Shown piece after piece: positions 39,719-62,406 of a DNA stretch of 64,000 nt. How positions within the stretch are numbered: position 1 is the first letter of the stretch; every line of letters begins with the position of its first letter. The DNA comes from Macrostomum hystrix (taxonomy: Eukaryota; Animalia; Platyhelminthes). The stretch covers positions 124,001 to 188,000 of the forward strand of contig CATNEN010000034.1 in NCBI GenBank assembly GCA_950097015.1, written 5' to 3'. The notes below the pieces were generated by a model, which ran no database searches, had not been told where the DNA came from, and was given only the letters and a program-made list of their open reading frames with translations. Position numbers and translations under genes: made by a program.

Positions 39719-40639
39719 TTTTAATTAATATCATTAATAATTATGTTTTATTTTATTAAATACTACGCCAGAAGCTCGCCACTTCATCAATATGCACGTG
39801 TCATCGACATACAGTCATCGTTTAAAATTATGTTTCGATAACACATTTAAACGAAAATGGTTGGCTATACTAAAAACATGTCATAAGTTTCAAACTTCAT
39901 GTAGCAGCTTAAGTGCCGCTAAATATATATTTGACGTATTTATGCAAGAAAGTTCTTCATTTTTTGAATTAAATTGAATAACAAGCGTCAAAAATGATAT
40001 TCCATGCATTGATATATTGATAATCATTTTCGTAGGCTACGATAGCATTAATTGATTCTGATTTTTATTACAAGCTAGAACCCCTGTTCAATGCCCTGTA
40101 AAGATCCTTGGCATCTTCTTCGATCCGATCTTCCCTTCCATGAGCACGTCAGATCCATCTCAAACAAGCTAAGGTTCGATCGCTAATACCTCGATTCTCC
40201 CCTGTGAAAAACGAGGTAGTAGCGTATCGCTGGCGAAACGCTGGTTTGGAGGCGCTGCAGTGTCAGCTTGTTTGTCCTTCCGTCTCCCCGTGTTATTTAT
40301 TATTCAGAGTTCTTTCTCAGTTGTCACGTAAGTTATTTTTAGACCTGTGTTTTTTTAGCTGAGTCACTCACGCCCAGCCGGGCCGGACCTACCGGGGGAG
40401 CGGACGCCCACCATCCCGCGAATGCTACCCCTGGGCTACAGTCTCGGCCAATCAGCGAGCGAACCGGCCTTATTACCTGTCTACGCTCGGCAAGAAGCCA
40501 CCCCTGGGCTCAGGACAGCGGCCGCTAGTCTACTAGCTACTGTGATTTGTCACCTTCGCTCAAGCTACAGCCGGGCATCCATCTCGCCGATCGATCTAAT
40601 TTTGGGTTAACATGACCCAATGTTTGGGTTAACTGTTTC

Positions 40640-40870
40640 CGGACCAGAACCGGACAAAACAGTGCATTTCTGACTCAGTTTGTCCGAATTACGTCCGGAT
40701 TTTTCTCCGCTTGCTTTCCGGGATAAAAAGCGGGCGAAGCATCGGATGAATTTACGGAGGAGCAGCCGGGCGAGATAACACTGTCGCCCGGAAAGTGATC
40801 CGCATTTTTATCCGGGCAGTCGTCCACCCCGGCACCGGACAAAGAGCGGATGTGCTTGCGGATGAAAGTG
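40640..40870. repeat. CCGG-rich imperfect inverted-repeat region upstream of the transposase
   Basis: CCGGGATAAAAAGCGG vs CCGCATTTTTATCCGG, and CCGGGCGA vs TCGCCCGG, are nested around about 40775. Confidence 0.45.
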
Positions 40871-41054
40871 GGTAGAGTATAAATGTAGGCTTATATTTGC
40901 GTGGTCCAATGGCACATTTCCATACCATTCGCACGACATGTTAATGTATAGTTACAAATAAACATATGCATTTAAAACCAATTCTAGCAATCGTCCACCT
41001 TGCACATCTTGTCAATTTTCTACTTTGCTTATCCTCACATTTCGTGACTGTGAG

Positions 41055-41130
41055 CCACTAAGATGCGCTTTAACTCCGCCAAAGCCGGTCCCAAATTAAG
41101 CCCGGTTGAAAAAGGAGGAGGGTTGGTGGA
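41055..41130 (+). ncRNA. Twister (type P1)-like self-cleaving ribozyme motif
   Basis: UAA (41071-73), P2 CUCC/GGAG, GCC, P4 GCCGG/CCGGU, loop UCCC...AAGC, GAGGG then UUGG. This matches the twister core; there is a 5-nt loop insertion and an imperfect P1. Confidence 0.75.
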
Positions 41131-41452
41131 CTTTTACGTATATTAGGACGTACGAGTATTAGGCAATACAATCAATAACAAGTTGCCAAACACTGCACCC
41201 ATTACTTATCAATGGAGTTATATGTACATACATTTATTAAAAGAGGACTTATTTAGGCAGGACAGATAATGAAATCCAATTATATAGCACTATATGTACG
41301 ACCAATGTATTTAGCTCTGAATAATACTGTCACTTTATATAGGTTAATTTCTGTGACCTGTAATGTCCACTTAACGCATCTGAACTCTTAAGAATAAATG
41401 TTGAAATTAACCAACTTTCAGTGCCGTACAGGCTAAACATCTTCGACAAGCA

Positions 41453-44170
41453 ATGGATGACGACTCCCGGCTAAAGCGTCGGCTGTACATGTGCCAGTAT
41501 ATGCAGAGGCGCAGAAGTGACAATCGTCCAGGGAACACCAGCAGAGGAGGCGGCTCGCGATCACCTATACGCCCTGTCGCCGGAGCGTCTGTTGTCGAAT
41601 CGGGTGCAGCCGTTGCAGGCGCAAGTATGACCACCGACGCCTTAAACACAGTCGACAGCCACCGCTCCGACTCCGACGATGATGACCTACCGGAGGATGT
41701 CGGCAATCAGGGCCCAGACGAGCAGTCCTGCACTAGTGGTGAGTCTCAGGTCGCGATTATCCAACTGCAGTAGCCCATTCTGAATGCTGATTAACTGCAC
41801 GATGCACATGCACTGTCTGTCCAAACTTCGCACTGCGCACCTTGCACGCAACCCCCTTACAGGCGACCAGTCAGACGACAGCTACAGCTCCGACAATGAT
41901 GATGAGGCCCCGCTCATGCCTGGAGCCCTCATGATGCGAATCCTCTGGCACGATGCTCTGCCCGGTACGCTCGCTGAGGCGTATTGTGAAGTCAACTCGT
42001 GCGCCCGGGACCTTAATTTGACAGTCTCCGGAACAACGCGCATATTGTTGATGCTCCACAGACTAGCACCAGGCAACCGCCTTCCTAGACACGGGCGCAC
42101 ATTACGTAACTCATTGAAGGCGCTTGGAACTATCTCGGGGTCGTCAAAATGCTACACTGTATGCAACGACTGCTATCAAAACTCGGAGCAGCGATGCGAT
42201 CCAGAGAATTCTACGAGCGCGACTTGTACCTCTGACAAGGTCGCCAACTTCTGGCTATTTGACATTCCTGCGCAAATCCGTACGTTGATCGAGTCGCGCG
42301 GTCTCCTTCAAAACGTTACGTTCCCCCTAGATCGTGCAGTCGATGAAAACAAGTTGCATTTCATTAACAGTGAACTGTACAAGACATTCGTAGACAATAT
42401 TGATCCCGCGGCTCGAAGTGACTTATCGTACACACTCTGTGCCGACGGATTCCCGCTATTTAGCACAAGTACCGCTGAGGCCTGTCCAGAATACTTAAGT
42501 ATAAATGAGGTGCATGAGAGGCTGAAGCTACGGTTCGTTGTTAAGTGCGGTTTGTGGGCTGGCAAGAAGAAGGTCCACGCCGCCGCTTTCCTGCCAGTCG
42601 TTGTTGACGCACTGAACCATCTGCGCTACGACGGTGTACAGTACCTCGACAGTGATGGTGTTCAGCGAAGACTGCGACTTCATGTGCTAGTGACAATTTT
42701 TGACGCTCCAGCGAGGGCGGACGCGCTCTGCATGAAGCGTTTTTCAGCAAAATATGGCTGCGACAAGTGCTACATACTGACGTCGTTACACCCATCCGGC
42801 GCCGGCCGCGTCTACGGCGTGAACATTACGCCTGGCATGCTTAATGAGGCCAGACGGCAAGGATGCGTGCAAACCGTAGTACGCTCGACTACCGACACGC
42901 TACGCAGAACAGGGTGGGAACAGACGAGACGACGTCCTAGGTGTCCGTGGTCTATCACCACTATCTGGCCTGTACGGGTTCGACTTCATCCGGGGAAGTC
43001 CGCCCTGTTACCTGCACCAGTTGTGCTCCGGCGTCGTGCGGAATATCCTGTTCCAGCTGTTCCTTGTTCGGCATAATAAACCGGACCGCGGAGCAACAAA
43101 CTGCCCGGATCTACACGCGGGGCTAACTGCAGTCAATCAGCGTTTGCGGCGCATTCGTGTTCCTCGAACTGTCCAGCGTCACACAGTCAGGTCGCTGAAA
43201 GACCTCCAACATATGCGCGGCCACGAGTACGCACTATGGTTGTTGGTGCTAGCACCTTTCATTCTGGATGACTTCATGGAGAACTACATGGACCACTACC
43301 ATCACATACTGCTATTGTCGTCTAGCATATTCTGGCTGTCATTGGAAGGAGCGCCGAGAGCTGAGTTGCCGCACGTAGAAATCACGCTTCGGCACTTTCA
43401 CGCAAACTTGGCGCGCCTGTACTCCCTTAGATTTCTCTCCTACAATGCGCACCAAGTGTGCGGCCACTTGCTGCCAGCAGCCATACTGGGTGGTCCTGTC
43501 AATCGTCTGTCTGCTGGCCTGTTTGAGACAATGCATACGAATTTGAGGAGAAAAATTCACGGATCGCGTCGCACGGACCTCGAGCTTGTTGGAGCCATAG
43601 AACGCGAACTAGCCGTCATGCAGGCTGAGGTGCTTCGGCGGGACAACGCTGCCACAGGCGCACCGGAGGACGGAATGCATGCGCACTGCATCAGGCATCA
43701 TTCTGCGGCGTCCTACGAGCATGGCTCATGGTTGGCATTCGGCGTCGCTACCGTCCGGGCTGTATTTGGAGAAATACCTCGCGGACACACCTGGTATTGA
43801 TGCGACCAATGCAATCCAGTCGTCATCAGCCTTCGTAGCCATTCCGGGAAGTCAGTCAACGACATTTCAGTTCTGCCGCGTGCAAGAAGTCGACTATGAC
43901 GACAATGAGGTCTACGTCATTGTTCGAATCCTACCAGTCGAGGACGTCGTTGTTGACCCTCTGGAGGCCCTGTGTGCCGTACCGGTCGACTCTGCGAACC
44001 GAGGTTGCAGGTTCGCACACATACGGTGTCTCCTAGTCGACCCATTCGGCGGTCTACCAGCTGAAGTCACCGACACACTTCGTGTTCATGTGAACGACAT
44101 CGTCGGCTCATGTGTTGTGTCTGACAGAAAAATTGGCATCATGCCACATCCCCAGATAGGCTTTCAGTGA
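41453..44170 (+). mobile_element. CMC/EnSpm (CACTA-type) DDE transposase gene, spliced, with two frameshifts
   Basis: Exon 41453-41738, then intron 41739-41862 (GTGAGT..TTACAG, phase 1). Motifs: ADGFPLF, GLWAGKKK, FDAPARA, YGCDKC, GVRGLSPL..FDFIRG..CYLH, FETMH. Frame breaks at about 42880-42925 and about 43675. Confidence 0.8.
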
Positions 44171-44449
44171 GTAAACCATGCGCCCTGTCAATCTGTGTTG
44201 TACTTTTTCGTATTGTTGGCAGTTCGCCAACGCGGTAGTGGGGGTTCGGGTACGGACCGCCCAAAGCTTGCCGGGGGTAGAGGGAGGGGAAGCAGCGACC
44301 CTCGAGGCGTCCAGACACTCCGAGGAGATACGGGATGGACTTGGAGCGTACCGACACTCGCTAAGCCCTGACTGAAGGTTTTGACTGCGAGCGGGTAGCC
44401 ACTCGACAGCCCAAGAGAGAGGTAGATGATGGTCTGGAAGCGTACCGAC

Positions 44450-44728
44450 ACTTCGGAGATCGCGCAGCTGAAGCAAGGAGGTGCGTCTGCGCATGCTGGG
44501 AGGCTTAGCCCACAGCCACAGTCAGCAGCAGCGCCTCAGTCGGCCAAGAGCTGTGGAAGGTGCCTTCAGGCTGGACATTCGACGGCGGAGTGCAGGAATC
44601 GGGTGGCATGCTACGCCTGTGGCCAGCCGGGTCACACCCGCGCCAGATGCCCGAATCAACAGGCTGCTCGGCAGCAGGGAAACGGGATGGGGGCCCGGCT
44701 AGGCCAGCGTCCCAGGCCCCGATTTTAG
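44450..44728 (+). CDS. gag: Gypsy gag C-terminal fragment (2 zinc knuckles)
   Basis: CGRCLQAGHSTAEC and CYACGQPGHTRARC (CX2CX4HX4C). Confidence 0.85.
   Translation, partial: TSEIAQLKQGGASAHAGRLSPQPQSAAAPQSAKSCGRCLQAGHSTAECRNRVACYACGQPGHTRARCPNQQAARQQGNGMGARLGQRPRPRF
44677..44720 (+). promoter_or_regulatory. -1 ribosomal frameshift signal at the gag/pol overlap
   Basis: G GGA AAC heptamer in the gag frame (44677-83); pol is in the -1 frame; GC-rich stem GGGGCC/GGCCCC starts 6 nt downstream. Confidence 0.75.
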
Positions 44729-46527
44729 TAACTGGAAAAGCGCCAGGGCCCTCGACCCAGACCCACGGTGTGCTTGGGAGAGCTGGGCTGGGCTACATCG
44801 ACGCGAAGTTTGAGTCGGGGCCTCTGGTAGCTTGCTTGCTGGACAGTGGGTCCAACGTATCTTTGCTTAGCAATCGTTTCTTAGAAGCTGAAAATATTAA
44901 AGGTCAATTGCAAAACAGTACATTAGATTTTTCTATTTTTACTGCTAATGGTGAGCCGATCGAAATTCAGGGCAACATTCAATTTCATTTTTCAATTGGG
45001 GAGACAAATTTCACACACGAGTTCCTGGTTGTCGACGGAATTTCACAGCCTTGCATTCTTGGAACAGATATTTTTCTAAAGCATTGCATGATTATTGATT
45101 TTGCCAAACACTGCCTGCAGACAGAAACCAGCGTGTATCCTTTTCGCCTGTGCGCTGAAACGCCGCTTCTTTGTCGTATTGTACTGTGCCAGAATATCCG
45201 TATGAGTATGGGAGAGGAGATGCTGATTCCGGTTCGCCTGCAGAGAAAAGGAGCGAAAGGTTTCCAGTTTCCAGGAATGGTAGAGCCCCGTCGGCAAGGT
45301 GAGCGTGAGCACCTCCTGGCCCGGTCCGTGCAGATGCCGAGTCAGGACGGGCATCTGTCAGTCAGGATCATGAACATTTCCGAGTCCAGCCTGTCAATGA
45401 GAAAGGGGGCGCGCATCGGCTGGTTCTCGCCGATCTCAGCGCAGCAGCCGGCAGAGCTGCAGCTGAACACTGTGCAGTCTGAGGAGGATTCGTGGAACCC
45501 CCTTAGCGAAGTGAAGGAGTGGGGGTCGTGTGGCCTAACTGAGGGTGAGTCGAGGGAGTTCGTGGAGCTTGTCGCCAGAAACCGCGATGTGTTTGCCAAA
45601 GACAGCTCTGAACTTGGCCTGACGGGCCTCTTGTCCGACGAGATTAACACGGGCAGCGCAAAGCCGGTAAGTGAGCCGCTGCGTCGGCTACCGCCCCACT
45701 GGCGAGAGGAAGTCAACAAACAGGTGGATCAGCTTCTGGCCGAAGGCCGCATATTCCCGTGCCAGTCACCCTGGTCGAGCCCGGTGGTGCCGGTCAAGAA
45801 ACCGGATGGCAGCCTCCGCATGTGTTTGGATTACAGGCGGCTGAACAGCGTGACTGTGCCGGATCCGCTACCTCCGCCCAGGATGGATGAGACGCTGGAT
45901 GCCTTGGGGGGAAACTGCATCTTCTCCACCATGGATCTGGCTTCCGGGTACCATCAGTGCCCGTTGGATCCAAAAGACCAGTTGAAGACGGCCTTCGTAG
46001 TGCCGAATCGGGGACAGTTCGCCTGGAATTGCATGAGCTTCGGGCTCAGGAACGCCCCGTCGACATTCACGAGACTCATGTCTATGGCGCTATCCGAGGT
46101 GAACTGGAAGGAGTGCTTCGTGTATTTCGACGATATTGTCGTCTTTTCTATAACAGTCCGGCAGCACTTTGAGCGCCTCTTGCACGTTTTTCAGTGTCTC
46201 CGGGCAGCTAACATTAGGCTAAAGCCCGCGAAATGTGTCTTCCTTGCCGACCGGATCAAGTTCCTAGGTCACGTGATCTCAAAGGATGGAATTGCCGCGA
46301 ACCCCGAGAAGTGTGCGGAGATTCAAAACTGGCCAAGGCCTTGCAGTGCTGCGAAGGTCCAATCGTTCTTGGGATTGTGCGTGTATTACAAAGCCTTTAT
46401 CCCAAATTTCTCCGAAATGGCCGCTCCGCTGTACAGGCTCACCGCGAGCGGAGCAGAGTTTAAATGGGGCCAAGATCAGGAAGAATCGTTCAACAACTTG
46501 AAGGCTGCTCTGTGTTCGCCTAGAGTG
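44677..46527 (+). CDS. pol: Gypsy pol, 5' part (protease, RT)
   Basis: LLDSGSNVSL (aspartic protease), WSSPVVPVKKPDGSLRMCLDYR, MDLASGYHQ, YFDD; truncated at LCSPRV by the insertion. Confidence 0.93.
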
Positions 46528-46955
46528 TATGCATACCTTTAACAGGGTATGCGGCCAGTCCGCAGTTTCGTGCACCTGTGCGTGATCAGGTACCTCTGGC
46601 TACGGCTCTGAGGAAAAGGTGCCACCCTCTGACCTTAACAGGGTATGCGGCCAGTCCGCAGCTTCGTGCACCTGTGCGTGATCAGGTACCTCTGGCTACG
46701 GCTCTGAGGAAAGGGTGCCACCCTTTGACCTTAACAGGGTATGCGGCCAGTCCGCAGTTTCTCGTGCACCTGTGCGTGATCAGGTACCTCTGGCTACGGC
46801 TCTGAGGAGAGGGTGTCACCCTTTGACCTTAACAGGGTATGCGGCCAGTCCGCAGCGTTTCGTGCACCTGTGCGTGATCAGGCACCTCTGGCTACGGCTC
46901 TGAGGGAAGGGTGTCACCCTTCGACCTTCACAGGGTATGCGGCCAGTCCGCAGGC
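46528..46955 (+). repeat. 96-98-bp tandem repeats (4 plus a partial) in the LINE 5' UTR
   Basis: AACAGGGTATGCGG starts at 46541, 46637, 46733 and 46831, with a variant at 46929. Confidence 0.93.
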
Positions 46956-60261: not shown

Positions 60262-62406
60262 TGGTTATAGCAATGGTTAGGTAACGCACGGCTTTTGAGT
60301 GCACCAACGAGCAGAGACACGAGTGCGCGGTTAACAGCATTATCCAATGAGAGGCCGTTTCCGCATCGATCCGTCCTTACTCTTTCGACCATAGACAAGT
60401 GCGTTGGCGCACGCCCATGTTTTTGGGCGGTCAGGCTGGCTTAAGGCGCAAGCCCCAACGCAGTTGAGTAGATAAGATTTCGACATGATCAACCTAATGC
60501 ACTGGCCGAATGAGTGCATATCTGGCTTGACCGTGGACGAGATTCGACTCCAGAGGGAGCTCTTCCAGCTGAACGACGTGGTGGAGAAGGAAATGTATGA
60601 ATATTTTGAATGTCCCACCCTGGACGAACTCTGTGCGTTACTGCCAGACGACTCTACCGCGGATTTGGAGGCAATTGCAGCGCAGCAATACGAGGATACG
60701 AAGGTCGTGTCCACCGAGAGACAAGAGATCGCTGCAGTCGAACGATTCAAGCAGTTCCTGACGACAAACGCATTTTTGCCTTTCGACATCGATTTGTGCA
60801 GTGAGGATGAACTGGCCTGCAAGCTGCGACTGTTTTACGCCACACTAAGAAAGGAAGACGGTTCTCTGTACGCTCCGACATCTCTGATTTGTGCGAGAGC
60901 TGGACTTTTCCGCTACTTTCGGAGGGTTAGGTCTCTGAACATAATCGAGAATGACAAGTTCCACGCAGCCAATCTGGCTTTGAAGGCGGTGGCGCGAATG
61001 TTTCTAAAGGCTGGTGGACGGATCAACCATTACGAGGCCATCAGTGAGGAAGATGAGGGCAGATTGGCGCGGTACTTTGACCGTGCGTCGCCGACGACCC
61101 TGTTGCACGAGGTATACTTTGTCCTCATCTACTTTTTCGGCCAGCGTGGGAGAGAATGGTTCCGTGGATTGGATTCGGACAGTCTGGTGTTCGAGGACAA
61201 TGCCGACTGTGGCACTCTAGTCCGGCTTCGCACAGGGTTGCAGAAGAATCTGGGAACGGAACTCAATGCCGGAGCCATGAGTGACAACAGAGAGGCGGTG
61301 ATCAAGGCCACTGGGACGACGCAATGTCCAGTGCAGGCACTGCGGCTTTACCTCGAGAAGCGACGGGAGGCTCTGGGTGACGCTGAGACGGAAGGATCTC
61401 CGCTGCTTCTGACACCGAAGAAGTCCTCTGCAGCTGGGGGCCCATGGTACACGAAACAGCCAGTCGGGGTGAATACCGTTGGCGGAATGATGAAGACTAT
61501 CTCAACGAAAGCTGCCCTGTCAAAGATCTACACGCCGCACAATATTCGGCCAACTGTGATTGCGGACCTTCACCAGGCAGGATTCAGGCTGGAGCAAATT
61601 TGCAAAATTACTGGCCACAAGGAGGCAAAGACTGTGCAACGGTGAGTACCCATATATGACGGGCTTTGCACTAACAAAGTGAACATGTCAACGTCATGAG
61701 TAACTACTTTCAATCGCACTTTAGGTACCTCACGCATGGGAAGCGGAAGGCAACGGACATGGGGAAGATGTCAGACGCTCTATCCGGATCGCTGTACGGG
61801 CGTCAACAGACGGGCGTGGTAGCAATTCTAGGGCCGCCGCCGCAGGGATCAGCTGAGCCCACCCCCGACGGTGTCATCCGGCATGTCAACTGTCATCTGA
61901 CAGTTCCAGGGGTCACCGGCGCATCGACGCCGCATGCGCAGCAGTCCACGCTTCAGCTTCCCTCCAGTCAGGTGGTGCAGCAAGTTTGTGTGACAAGTTC
62001 GACCCCTGGCAACGCTGGAGCTCCAGCGCTGTCATTCCACTTTGGTGGACATTTTGAGAACTGCACATTCAACCTTAAGTGAGCTGCCTGAGTTCTAATA
62101 AGAGCACGAGTAAGTGACATTTCTACTTGACAATGCCACACACGGTCATCTGGAGTATGCCGTGCAAACTGCTATGAAAATGTTGTCGCCGTTAATATTT
62201 CGTAAACACCAACAACAATCCCCTTGTTGTACCGTTAATTCTTACTACGTTTTGAGCTCAAATAATTGCACTCTAAGTTTGCGTGCTGATAACGGTCATT
62301 GACGCACGCATTTTAGGCCGTTGATGCACGCTGTCTATGGTAAAATCTAGCATTGACGTGGCACGCTGAGACTGCCTATCGTTTGATAATGTGGCATGTG
62401 GTTATA
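60262..62406 (+). mobile_element. Crypton-type tyrosine-recombinase DNA transposon, about 2.1 kb
   Basis: An 8-bp direct repeat TGGTTATA at 60262-69 and 62399-406 brackets the YR gene. The boundaries are inferred. Confidence 0.65.
60485..62082 (+). CDS. Crypton tyrosine recombinase (DUF3504-like), 2 exons
   Basis: Exons 60485-61641 and 61725-62082; intron 61642-61724 (GTGAGT..TTTAG, phase 2). Motifs FGQRGRE, CPV, HNIR, TGH, QR|Y, terminal FENCTFN. Confidence 0.88.

Follow-up and report, generated by a model that had tools for sequence, protein, structure and literature searches.

Introduction

Type-P1 twister ribozymes (RF03160, clan CL00120), such as Osa-1-4 of rice, are built on a P2-P4 core with two pseudoknots, CCC/GGG and GC/GC. 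Cleavage occurs at a U-A step followed by a further A, a G stands directly after the 3' strand of P2, and P3 and P5 are absent. One role has been demonstrated for a eukaryotic twister, in the retrotransposition of Perere-3 (PMC8501958). Perere-3 is a flatworm LINE that needs a defined RNA 5' end. Its twister lies upstream of the gene and on the same strand, with a P1 whose 5' strand does not belong to the element as a constant component. Cleavage falls at the element end, where the target-site duplication also lies. Other small self-cleaving ribozymes also process the transcripts of the mobile elements that carry them. HDV-like ribozymes head R2, L1Tc and RTE, and hammerheads occur in retrozymes, SINE-like repeats and Penelope-like elements (review, PMC6765202). 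These carriers are class I elements with an RNA intermediate, and the same review treats the ribozymes of mobile elements under retrotransposons only. Twisters have also been engineered into 5' and 3' UTRs in order to silence genes (3'-UTR reporter work is cited in PMC6765202). In full-text searches of the literature on self-cleaving ribozymes and DNA transposons, no natural twister was encountered in a DNA transposon of a eukaryote.

The locus described here comes from the flatworm Macrostomum hystrix. The window is the whole stretch of DNA that was analysed, 64,000 nt of contig CATNEN010000034.1 (positions 124,001 to 188,000, forward strand). An earlier note on this stretch, made from the letters alone, pointed to a twister-like motif upstream of a DNA-transposon transposase. 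It offered two readings, a relic of a retroelement 5' end or a ribozyme recruited by a CMC transposon, and called the latter pairing unusual. The motif shares with type-P1 twisters all of the core features listed above, and we take it to be nearly identical in sequence to the rice Osa-1-4 twister. It differs from them in five extra L4 nucleotides, the lack of an in-register P1, a score of 35 against 67.2 bits, and an animal DNA transposon as host. Like the Perere-3 twister, it belongs to a flatworm mobile element, lies upstream of a gene on the same strand and has no P1 5' strand that is a fixed element part. Unlike Perere-3, its host is a cut-and-paste CMC element whose DNA continues for ~430 nt upstream of the cleavage site.

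Results

Sequence, fold and score of the window motif

Base-by-base inspection places the predicted cleavage step at U41071/A41072, within the UAA loop on the plus strand of the window. P2 is formed by CUCC (41074-77) and GGAG (41114-17). P4 is formed by CCGG (41085-88) and CCGG (41102-05) and is capped by loop L4. Pseudoknot T2 joins GC 41078-79 of L2 to GC 41100-01 of L4, and pseudoknot T1 joins CCC 41090-92 of L4 to GGG 41120-22 of GAGGG. G41118, the guanine directly after the 3' strand of P2, is the first letter of that GAGGG. All of these elements had been named in the earlier note and each is found as described. The columns of A41072 and A41073 are invariant across an alignment of 17 genomic copies (A1). 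The coordinates of the motif, its host element and the related loci are collected in Table 1.

Table 1. Features of the window and of related twister loci. Positions without a contig name are those of the window. The four rows with counts refer to the first coordinate tally of neighbouring genes.
Feature	Location or count	Strand	Basis or remark
5' subterminal region of CMC element, CCGGA/TCCGG-rich	40635..40871	+	homology to L050:315-550
5' arm of bulged P1, CCACUAA	41055..41061	+	pairs with UUGGUGG 41123-41129; in minimum-energy fold
Twister core without P3	41067..41126	+	Rfam RF03160, full-length alignment
AT-rich spacer (68% A+T), candidate 5'-UTR intron	41127..41421	+	read from sequence
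First transposase coding part, ATG 41453 (MDDDSRLKRR...)	41453..41770	+	homology to relatives
Main transposase frame, CMC (Transposase_21-type), 430 aa	41784..43073	+	Pfam Transposase_21, homologues
Transposase continuation, two other frames (42880-43797, 43613-44167)	42880..44167	+	tblastn to L049
L058 twister	contig C12:293008-293074	-	upstream of transposase pieces 291265-292096 (-)
L059 twister	contig C1:16501505-16501571	+	upstream of transposase pieces 16502558-16503704 (+)
Ulp1/PHD ORF upstream of twister	20/62 twisters	same strand	230-700 nt after ~1000-aa MULE-like ORF
FLYWCH-MULE ORF upstream of twister	16/62 twisters	same strand	80-410 nt after ORF
CMC gene downstream of twister	3/62 twisters	same strand	coordinate matching
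No neighbour gene matched	23/62 twisters		

The Rfam twister-P1 model (RF03160) matches the motif from its first to its last position with 35.0 bits, which gives an E-value of 3.5e-6 in a search of 301 nt and of 6.2e-4 across the entire 220-Mb assembly. The covariance search that the earlier note had proposed is thus significant genome-wide but remains below the RF03160 gathering score of 67.2 bits. A scan of the whole window at Rfam gathering thresholds returns no match, and the motif appears only when an E-value threshold is used. The low score and the blank scan are attributed to the P3 hairpin, which RF03160 expects and which is absent here. A genome-specific model (R1) gives the window copy 64.8 bits and finds a single match in the window, the motif itself. 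The window copy belongs to the training set of R1, so its significance rests on the Rfam score instead. The minimum-energy fold of the motif region has an unremarkable energy (z-score -1.17). The core is 83-85% identical to covarying twister copies elsewhere in the genome.

Loop L4 reads UCCCAAAUUAAGC in the window and is 5 nt longer than in all 16 other aligned copies; the earlier note had named this insertion. The extra nucleotides lie within 41093-41099 and are absent from 38 of the 38 other copies that were read. The conserved letters of the canonical loop (UCCCAAGC) are all present and are split by the five extra nucleotides. When natural twisters were assayed at high throughput, those with L4 insertions cleaved less on average, but cleavage showed no dependence on L4 length (PMC11662667).

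The in-register P1 of the window copy forms one of six pairs. The bulged P1 (CCACUAA/UUGGUGG) proposed in its place does exist, but it is no better than chance, as 14% of shuffled flanks pair equally well. Long-range P1 helices in the three CMC copies described below and in locus L033 are likewise indistinguishable from those of shuffled flanks. There is no credible P1 in the window copy. P1 is reported as not important for twister cleavage (PMC11662667), and for this reason the poor P1 is not treated as disqualifying; the earlier note was right to treat it as doubtful.

Every core feature of the twister class that was tested is present in the motif. P1 is lacking, the score falls short of the Rfam threshold and L4 is interrupted. 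Judged by these features, the motif is a genuine twister-class self-cleaving ribozyme sequence, type-P1-like without P3 and slightly damaged.

The host element

The 5' subterminal region of the host is 76% identical to L050:315-550 over 237 nt (E 1.5e-44), a segment that precedes the transposase gene of L050, the closest relative with a complete 5' part. The twister lies 190 nt downstream of this block and 326 nt upstream of the transposase ATG. Counted from the cleavage site, the distance to the ATG is in agreement with the ~380 nt given in the earlier note. Coding homology downstream of the twister begins at 41411. By BLAST, the sequence that flanks the motif occurs nowhere else in the genome, and other twister copies match the motif only in its 55-60-nt core. 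Because CMC homology is present both upstream (40635-40871) and downstream (from 41411), the twister is placed by homology inside the 5' leader region of the CMC element.

A repeat of ~360 bp (window 40256-40620), with at least 40 genomic copies at 79-87% identity, abuts the left end of the CMC sequence. This high-copy repeat probably truncates or interrupts the element upstream of 40635. The motif was also considered as a part of the repeat; this was rejected, as the CMC block stands between the two. A general scan, a 13-mer search of the left region and a comparison of the left with the right region gave no convincing terminal inverted repeats or target-site duplication for the window element. 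Its ends may be lost, since the element is cut at 40635 by the repeat and split by ~12 kb of retroelements.

The AT-rich spacer has GT sites that resemble splice donors (41138, 41150 and 41156). It ends in an acceptor-like UUUCAG (41416-41421), 31 nt ahead of the ATG. The junction of UUUCAG and a following ATG is also found in L049 and L050. The spacer is probably a leader (5'-UTR) intron with predicted splicing at such sites.

At the amino acid level, the first coding part is 40% identical to the corresponding region of L049 and L050; L054 and L056 match it more weakly. Protein starts that resemble the window N-terminus (ATGGATGACGA-like) are found in L059 and in L049/L050. The main frame matches Pfam Transposase_21 (PF02992) below the cut-off (E 0.003), and a piece of L058 matches Pfam DUF1258 (E 0.002). 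The intact relative L049 has an Atlas score of 0.98, with 224 of 256 shared features, against clusters carrying PF02992 and PF06869 (DUF1258). A Pfam search of the intact CMC relatives gives no recognised domain. The transposase has few database relatives, one of which is a Macrostomum lignano protein. On the basis of the sub-threshold Transposase_21 match, the L049 Atlas score and the database relatives, including that of M. lignano, the host is accepted as a CMC/EnSpm-type (Transposase_21-type) DNA transposon. The main frame has 82 matching stretches in the genome, which group into ~61 loci.

By tblastn, both continuation pieces line up in order along the one 807-aa frame of L049, which implies at least two frameshifts in the window copy. 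The N-terminal part and the main frame also lie in different frames, both in the window (41411-41783) and in the intact L049 (L049:983-1413). Because the same frame change occurs in the dead window copy and in L049, a conserved intron is suggested at this place instead of a frameshift. Downstream of the transposase sequence, an ORF with a protease and a reverse transcriptase (44560-46542) marks a retroelement insertion. By its frameshifts and this insertion, the CMC element of the window reads as dead. Given the dead host and the L4 insertion, the window ribozyme may be weakened or inactive today.

A repeat of ~265 bp (window 44195-44459) with at least 35 copies at 85-99% identity is found where the transposase breaks off, before the 44560-46542 ORF. 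This repeat may be a retroelement terminus.

Twisters in other CMC copies

Within 5 kb of the 61 CMC loci there are only three twisters, with both strands checked. All three, those of the window, L058 and L059, are upstream of the transposase and on the same strand. The chance expectation of such pairs is 0.013 (P ~4e-7, or 2e-3 when 20-fold repeat clustering is allowed). Across the three copies the twister is 213-326 nt upstream of the transposase ATG. In L058 and L059 it is 213-238 nt before an ATG that opens an N-terminus similar to that of the window, and the order is the same as in the window: twister, GT-like site, AT-rich stretch, YCAG, ATG.

The three twister-bearing transposases are 43-58% identical to one another and their non-coding flanks are unalignable. 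The ribozyme cores are 83-94% identical. Between L058 and L059, the twisters are 94% identical and the transposases 43%. Between the window and L058, P4 shows a compensatory change of C-G to U-A. All three CMC copies are decayed, and their twisters are flawed at one point each. The window copy has the L4 insert, L058 reads GAGAG for GAGGG, and in L059 P4 contains a U.C mismatch.

Nine other CMC loci contain no twister, and no remnant above 10 bits is found in their leaders by R1 with filters off. These loci include the nearest relatives L049 and L050 (77% amino acid identity to the window), and the leader of L050 is complete. A CMC homologue on a marine metagenome contig (L061, 46% identical) also has no twister. 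With nine loci lacking it, 77%-identical relatives among them, the twister is, as far as these copies tell, lineage-restricted and not general to the CMC family. The earlier suggestion that the ribozyme belongs to a CMC transposon stands as an association, with the motif at the same relative place in three diverged copies (in L058 and L059 besides the window), but it does not extend to the family as a whole. The transposase tree does not unite the three twister-bearing copies in a clade, so several losses or several gains are needed.

One further mobile-element frame was seen near the L058 twister. A Crypton-like tyrosine-recombinase frame (DUF3504 and Phage_integrase; L058:5135-6001, minus strand, contig C12) lies 1 kb upstream of it on the same strand, and is 27% identical to a Crypton at window 61088-61627.

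Twisters across the genome

Across the assembly, RF03160 gives at least 51 matches. All are without P3 and score 25-51.5 bits, below the gathering score, and this holds for the young, covarying copies too. Alignment A1 draws its 17 twister copies from several families, and its pairs were counted with both pseudoknots included. Pairing is 86.9%, against 77.5% in shuffled alignments, and none of 500 shuffles reaches the observed value. In eleven pairs both partners are changed. Pairing is complete in P2 (100%), where compensatory changes occur; P4 is 93.8% paired with changes on both sides in three of its four pairs, and pseudoknots T1 and T2 are 91% and 97% paired. The sequence of P1 differs from family to family, yet P1 pairs in the MULE-borne families and covaries between MULE lineages. 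Model R1, which was built from A1, finds 72 genomic places, 62 of them at E<1e-5.

The genes next to these 62 twisters were tallied by coordinates (Table 1). For the MULE-type genes the tally counts same-strand neighbours only (all 36 are on the same strand); for the CMC loci it covers both strands. Three of four further copies fetched afterwards fall in the two MULE-type groups, and their new P1 sequences still pair. With most loci seen with 1.5-kb flanks only and 19 of 62 twisters left without an assigned gene, at least 39 of the ~62 twisters follow a MULE-type transposase gene of the same strand at a distance of 80-700 nt. By these gene assignments, most twisters in the genome sit in DNA transposons or adjoin DNA-transposon genes, and the pairing in the window is not the one-off that it had first seemed. 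The association of twister and MULE holds down to ~37-45% protein identity. Perfect twisters are retained in copies with 98-100% identity and open frames.

In family B, the twister is 80-170 nt downstream of a frame with FLYWCH and MULE transposase domains (Pfam MULE E 1.4e-13). Short direct repeats come before a sharp 3' terminus with the ending ...GACTAGGATCC, and the twister is 220 nt inside this terminus. The ...GACTAGGATCC terminus recurs in diverged copies, 130-440 nt after their twisters. Internal-deletion derivatives of family B retain the twister. In the young FLYWCH-MULE family L006-L015, copies are up to 100% identical and an AAUAAA is present at most 10 nt after the ribozyme. An example is L011, with the ORF at 2-1345, the twister at 1501-1557 and the terminus at 1776.

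In families C and D, the twister is 230-700 nt downstream of a ~1000-aa ORF with C-terminal Ulp1-protease and PHD domains. The middle of this ORF has an Atlas score of 0.91 (MULE-like), and BLASTP matches it weakly to the family-B transposase along the DDE region. A homology search of the ORF gives low-complexity matches only. The ORF is provisionally called MULE-like. It is preceded by a tandem-repeat stretch that keeps the frame open, as in L060 and L027, which together make up contig C28:16900-23987. The relatives of this pair are L005, L016-L020, L023-L030 and L063. The twister is found 230-700 nt downstream in ~20 of 25 loci of the ORF, at protein identities between 100% and 37%.

The family A twisters (L001-L003 and L022; contigs C5 twice, C39 and C38) have a 5-bp P1. 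They are found 77 nt downstream of a 154-aa frame without a Pfam match, in a repeat of at least 2.7 kb. The L033 twister (1499-1553) has G for U at position -1 and is 237 nt downstream of a SET-domain frame (489-1262), with ~60-nt tandem repeats between the two. A second, damaged copy of the L033-type twister (L062:1526-1589) is found 7.7 kb upstream of the L059 twister.

Discussion

The window probably contains a genuine twister-class sequence in the 5' leader of a CMC/EnSpm element, which would cut read-in RNA and uncouple or damp transposase expression. This reading starts from what is observed: the features that make the motif a member of its class, its place inside the element, and the recurrence of twisters beside transposon genes. 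On the plus strand, the 5' subterminal repeats are followed by the twister, the AT-rich spacer with its putative intron, and the ATG. RNA read from the left end of the element, or from host DNA upstream of it, would fold into the core of P2, P4 and the double pseudoknot. The folded RNA would then cut itself between U41071 and A41072. This predicted cleavage would detach the capped upstream part and leave a 5'-OH RNA that begins 381 nt before the ATG. The expected regulatory effect is that transposase expression would be uncoupled from read-in transcription or dampened under it.

Because cut-and-paste elements move without an RNA intermediate, transcripts are all that the ribozyme can act on. 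Its most likely role is to cut them at the element border, which would insulate or tune the transposase mRNA. In the MULE families the twister follows the transposase gene and would cut outgoing transcripts; in the FLYWCH-MULE lineage it stands 130-440 nt from the 3' terminus. Such a cut in the trailer would remove the poly(A) tail or the read-out RNA. The predicted loss of cap or poly(A) and the lower expression are shared with twisters engineered into UTRs. Those are artificial, whereas the twisters described here are natural and conserved across diverged transposon lineages.

A different history for the CMC twisters is that a short twister fragment, for instance from a MULE 3' end or an L033-type unit, was captured separately by three CMC leaders and has no role in the transposon. 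DNA transposons of the CMC and MULE superfamilies pick up foreign fragments. The scatter of the bearers in the transposase tree, with sister copies that have no motif, fits such captures, as does the high identity of the L058 and L059 twisters (94%) beside that of their transposases (43%). But only the 55-60-nt core is common to the three copies, and no donor flank accompanies it. Three captures would each have had to land on the same strand and in an equivalent position, 213-326 nt ahead of the ATG and just upstream of a putative intron, which is improbable. The compensatory change in P4 also argues for selection after divergence. Separate capture is considered unlikely. From the sequence comparisons, the twister is concluded to be an inherited and selected part of the leader in one or more old CMC branches, which would have been lost from the intact lineages and would now be decaying with its hosts.

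The ribozyme might instead set the processed 5' end of an RNA that is translated cap-free, so that read-through transcripts would yield transposase. In Schistosoma mansoni, cleavage by a T-variant twister at the Perere-3 5' end sufficed for translation of a downstream reporter (PMC8501958), and the window motif is likewise upstream and on the same strand. The three CMC copies have no fixed P1, which is comparable to elements whose 5' P1 strand is flanking DNA, and a similar role has been proposed for the HDV-like ribozymes of LINEs. Against this, cut-and-paste transposition does not depend on a defined RNA 5' end. The cleavage site and the ATG are separated by 381 nt that include a probable intron, homologous element DNA extends beyond the cleavage site on its upstream side, unlike at a LINE 5' end, and in the MULE families the ribozyme comes after the gene. 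A role in defining the RNA end for translation is quite improbable here.

The first reading of the earlier note, a relic of a non-LTR retrotransposon 5' end that came by chance to precede a transposase, draws on the fact that flatworm twisters were first tied to a LINE (PMC8501958). It is highly improbable and was rejected. The motif is not followed by an ORF for a reverse transcriptase or an endonuclease. Some 3 kb of transposase sequence separates it from the reverse transcriptase at 44560-46542, which is accompanied by an aspartic protease. CMC sequence is present on both flanks, with homologous element DNA upstream of the cleavage site, and no twister examined in the genome heads a LINE. 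A Perere-3-like element would have a reverse transcriptase gene directly downstream and copy homology that starts at the cleavage site; the motif shows neither. Chance resemblance without ribozyme ancestry, to which the score below the gathering threshold and the fold z-score could point, was also rejected and is excluded for practical purposes by the full-length match (genome-wide E 6e-4) and the identity of the core to covarying copies.

The genetic setting of the motif, a class II transposon, differs from all published cases found. The twister type itself is known. The carriers described for HDV-like ribozymes and hammerheads move through RNA; those found here (CMC, MULE) are class II. An element without an RNA intermediate has no obvious need of a self-cleaving ribozyme, so conserved twisters beside MULE and CMC genes point to mRNA processing or self-restraint. 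The window copy is a worn relic of modest interest, and its value is in leading to the genome-wide pattern of twisters and DNA transposons. It is tentatively proposed, as an idea that could well prove wrong, that in this flatworm twisters may be regular and selected parts of cut-and-paste DNA transposons, with two MULE-type lineages carrying them in the trailer and a CMC lineage in the leader, where they would act as RNA-level border guards or set the dosage of transposase. If true, this would be the first partnership of a natural ribozyme with a class II transposon in a eukaryote, and a second role for twisters.
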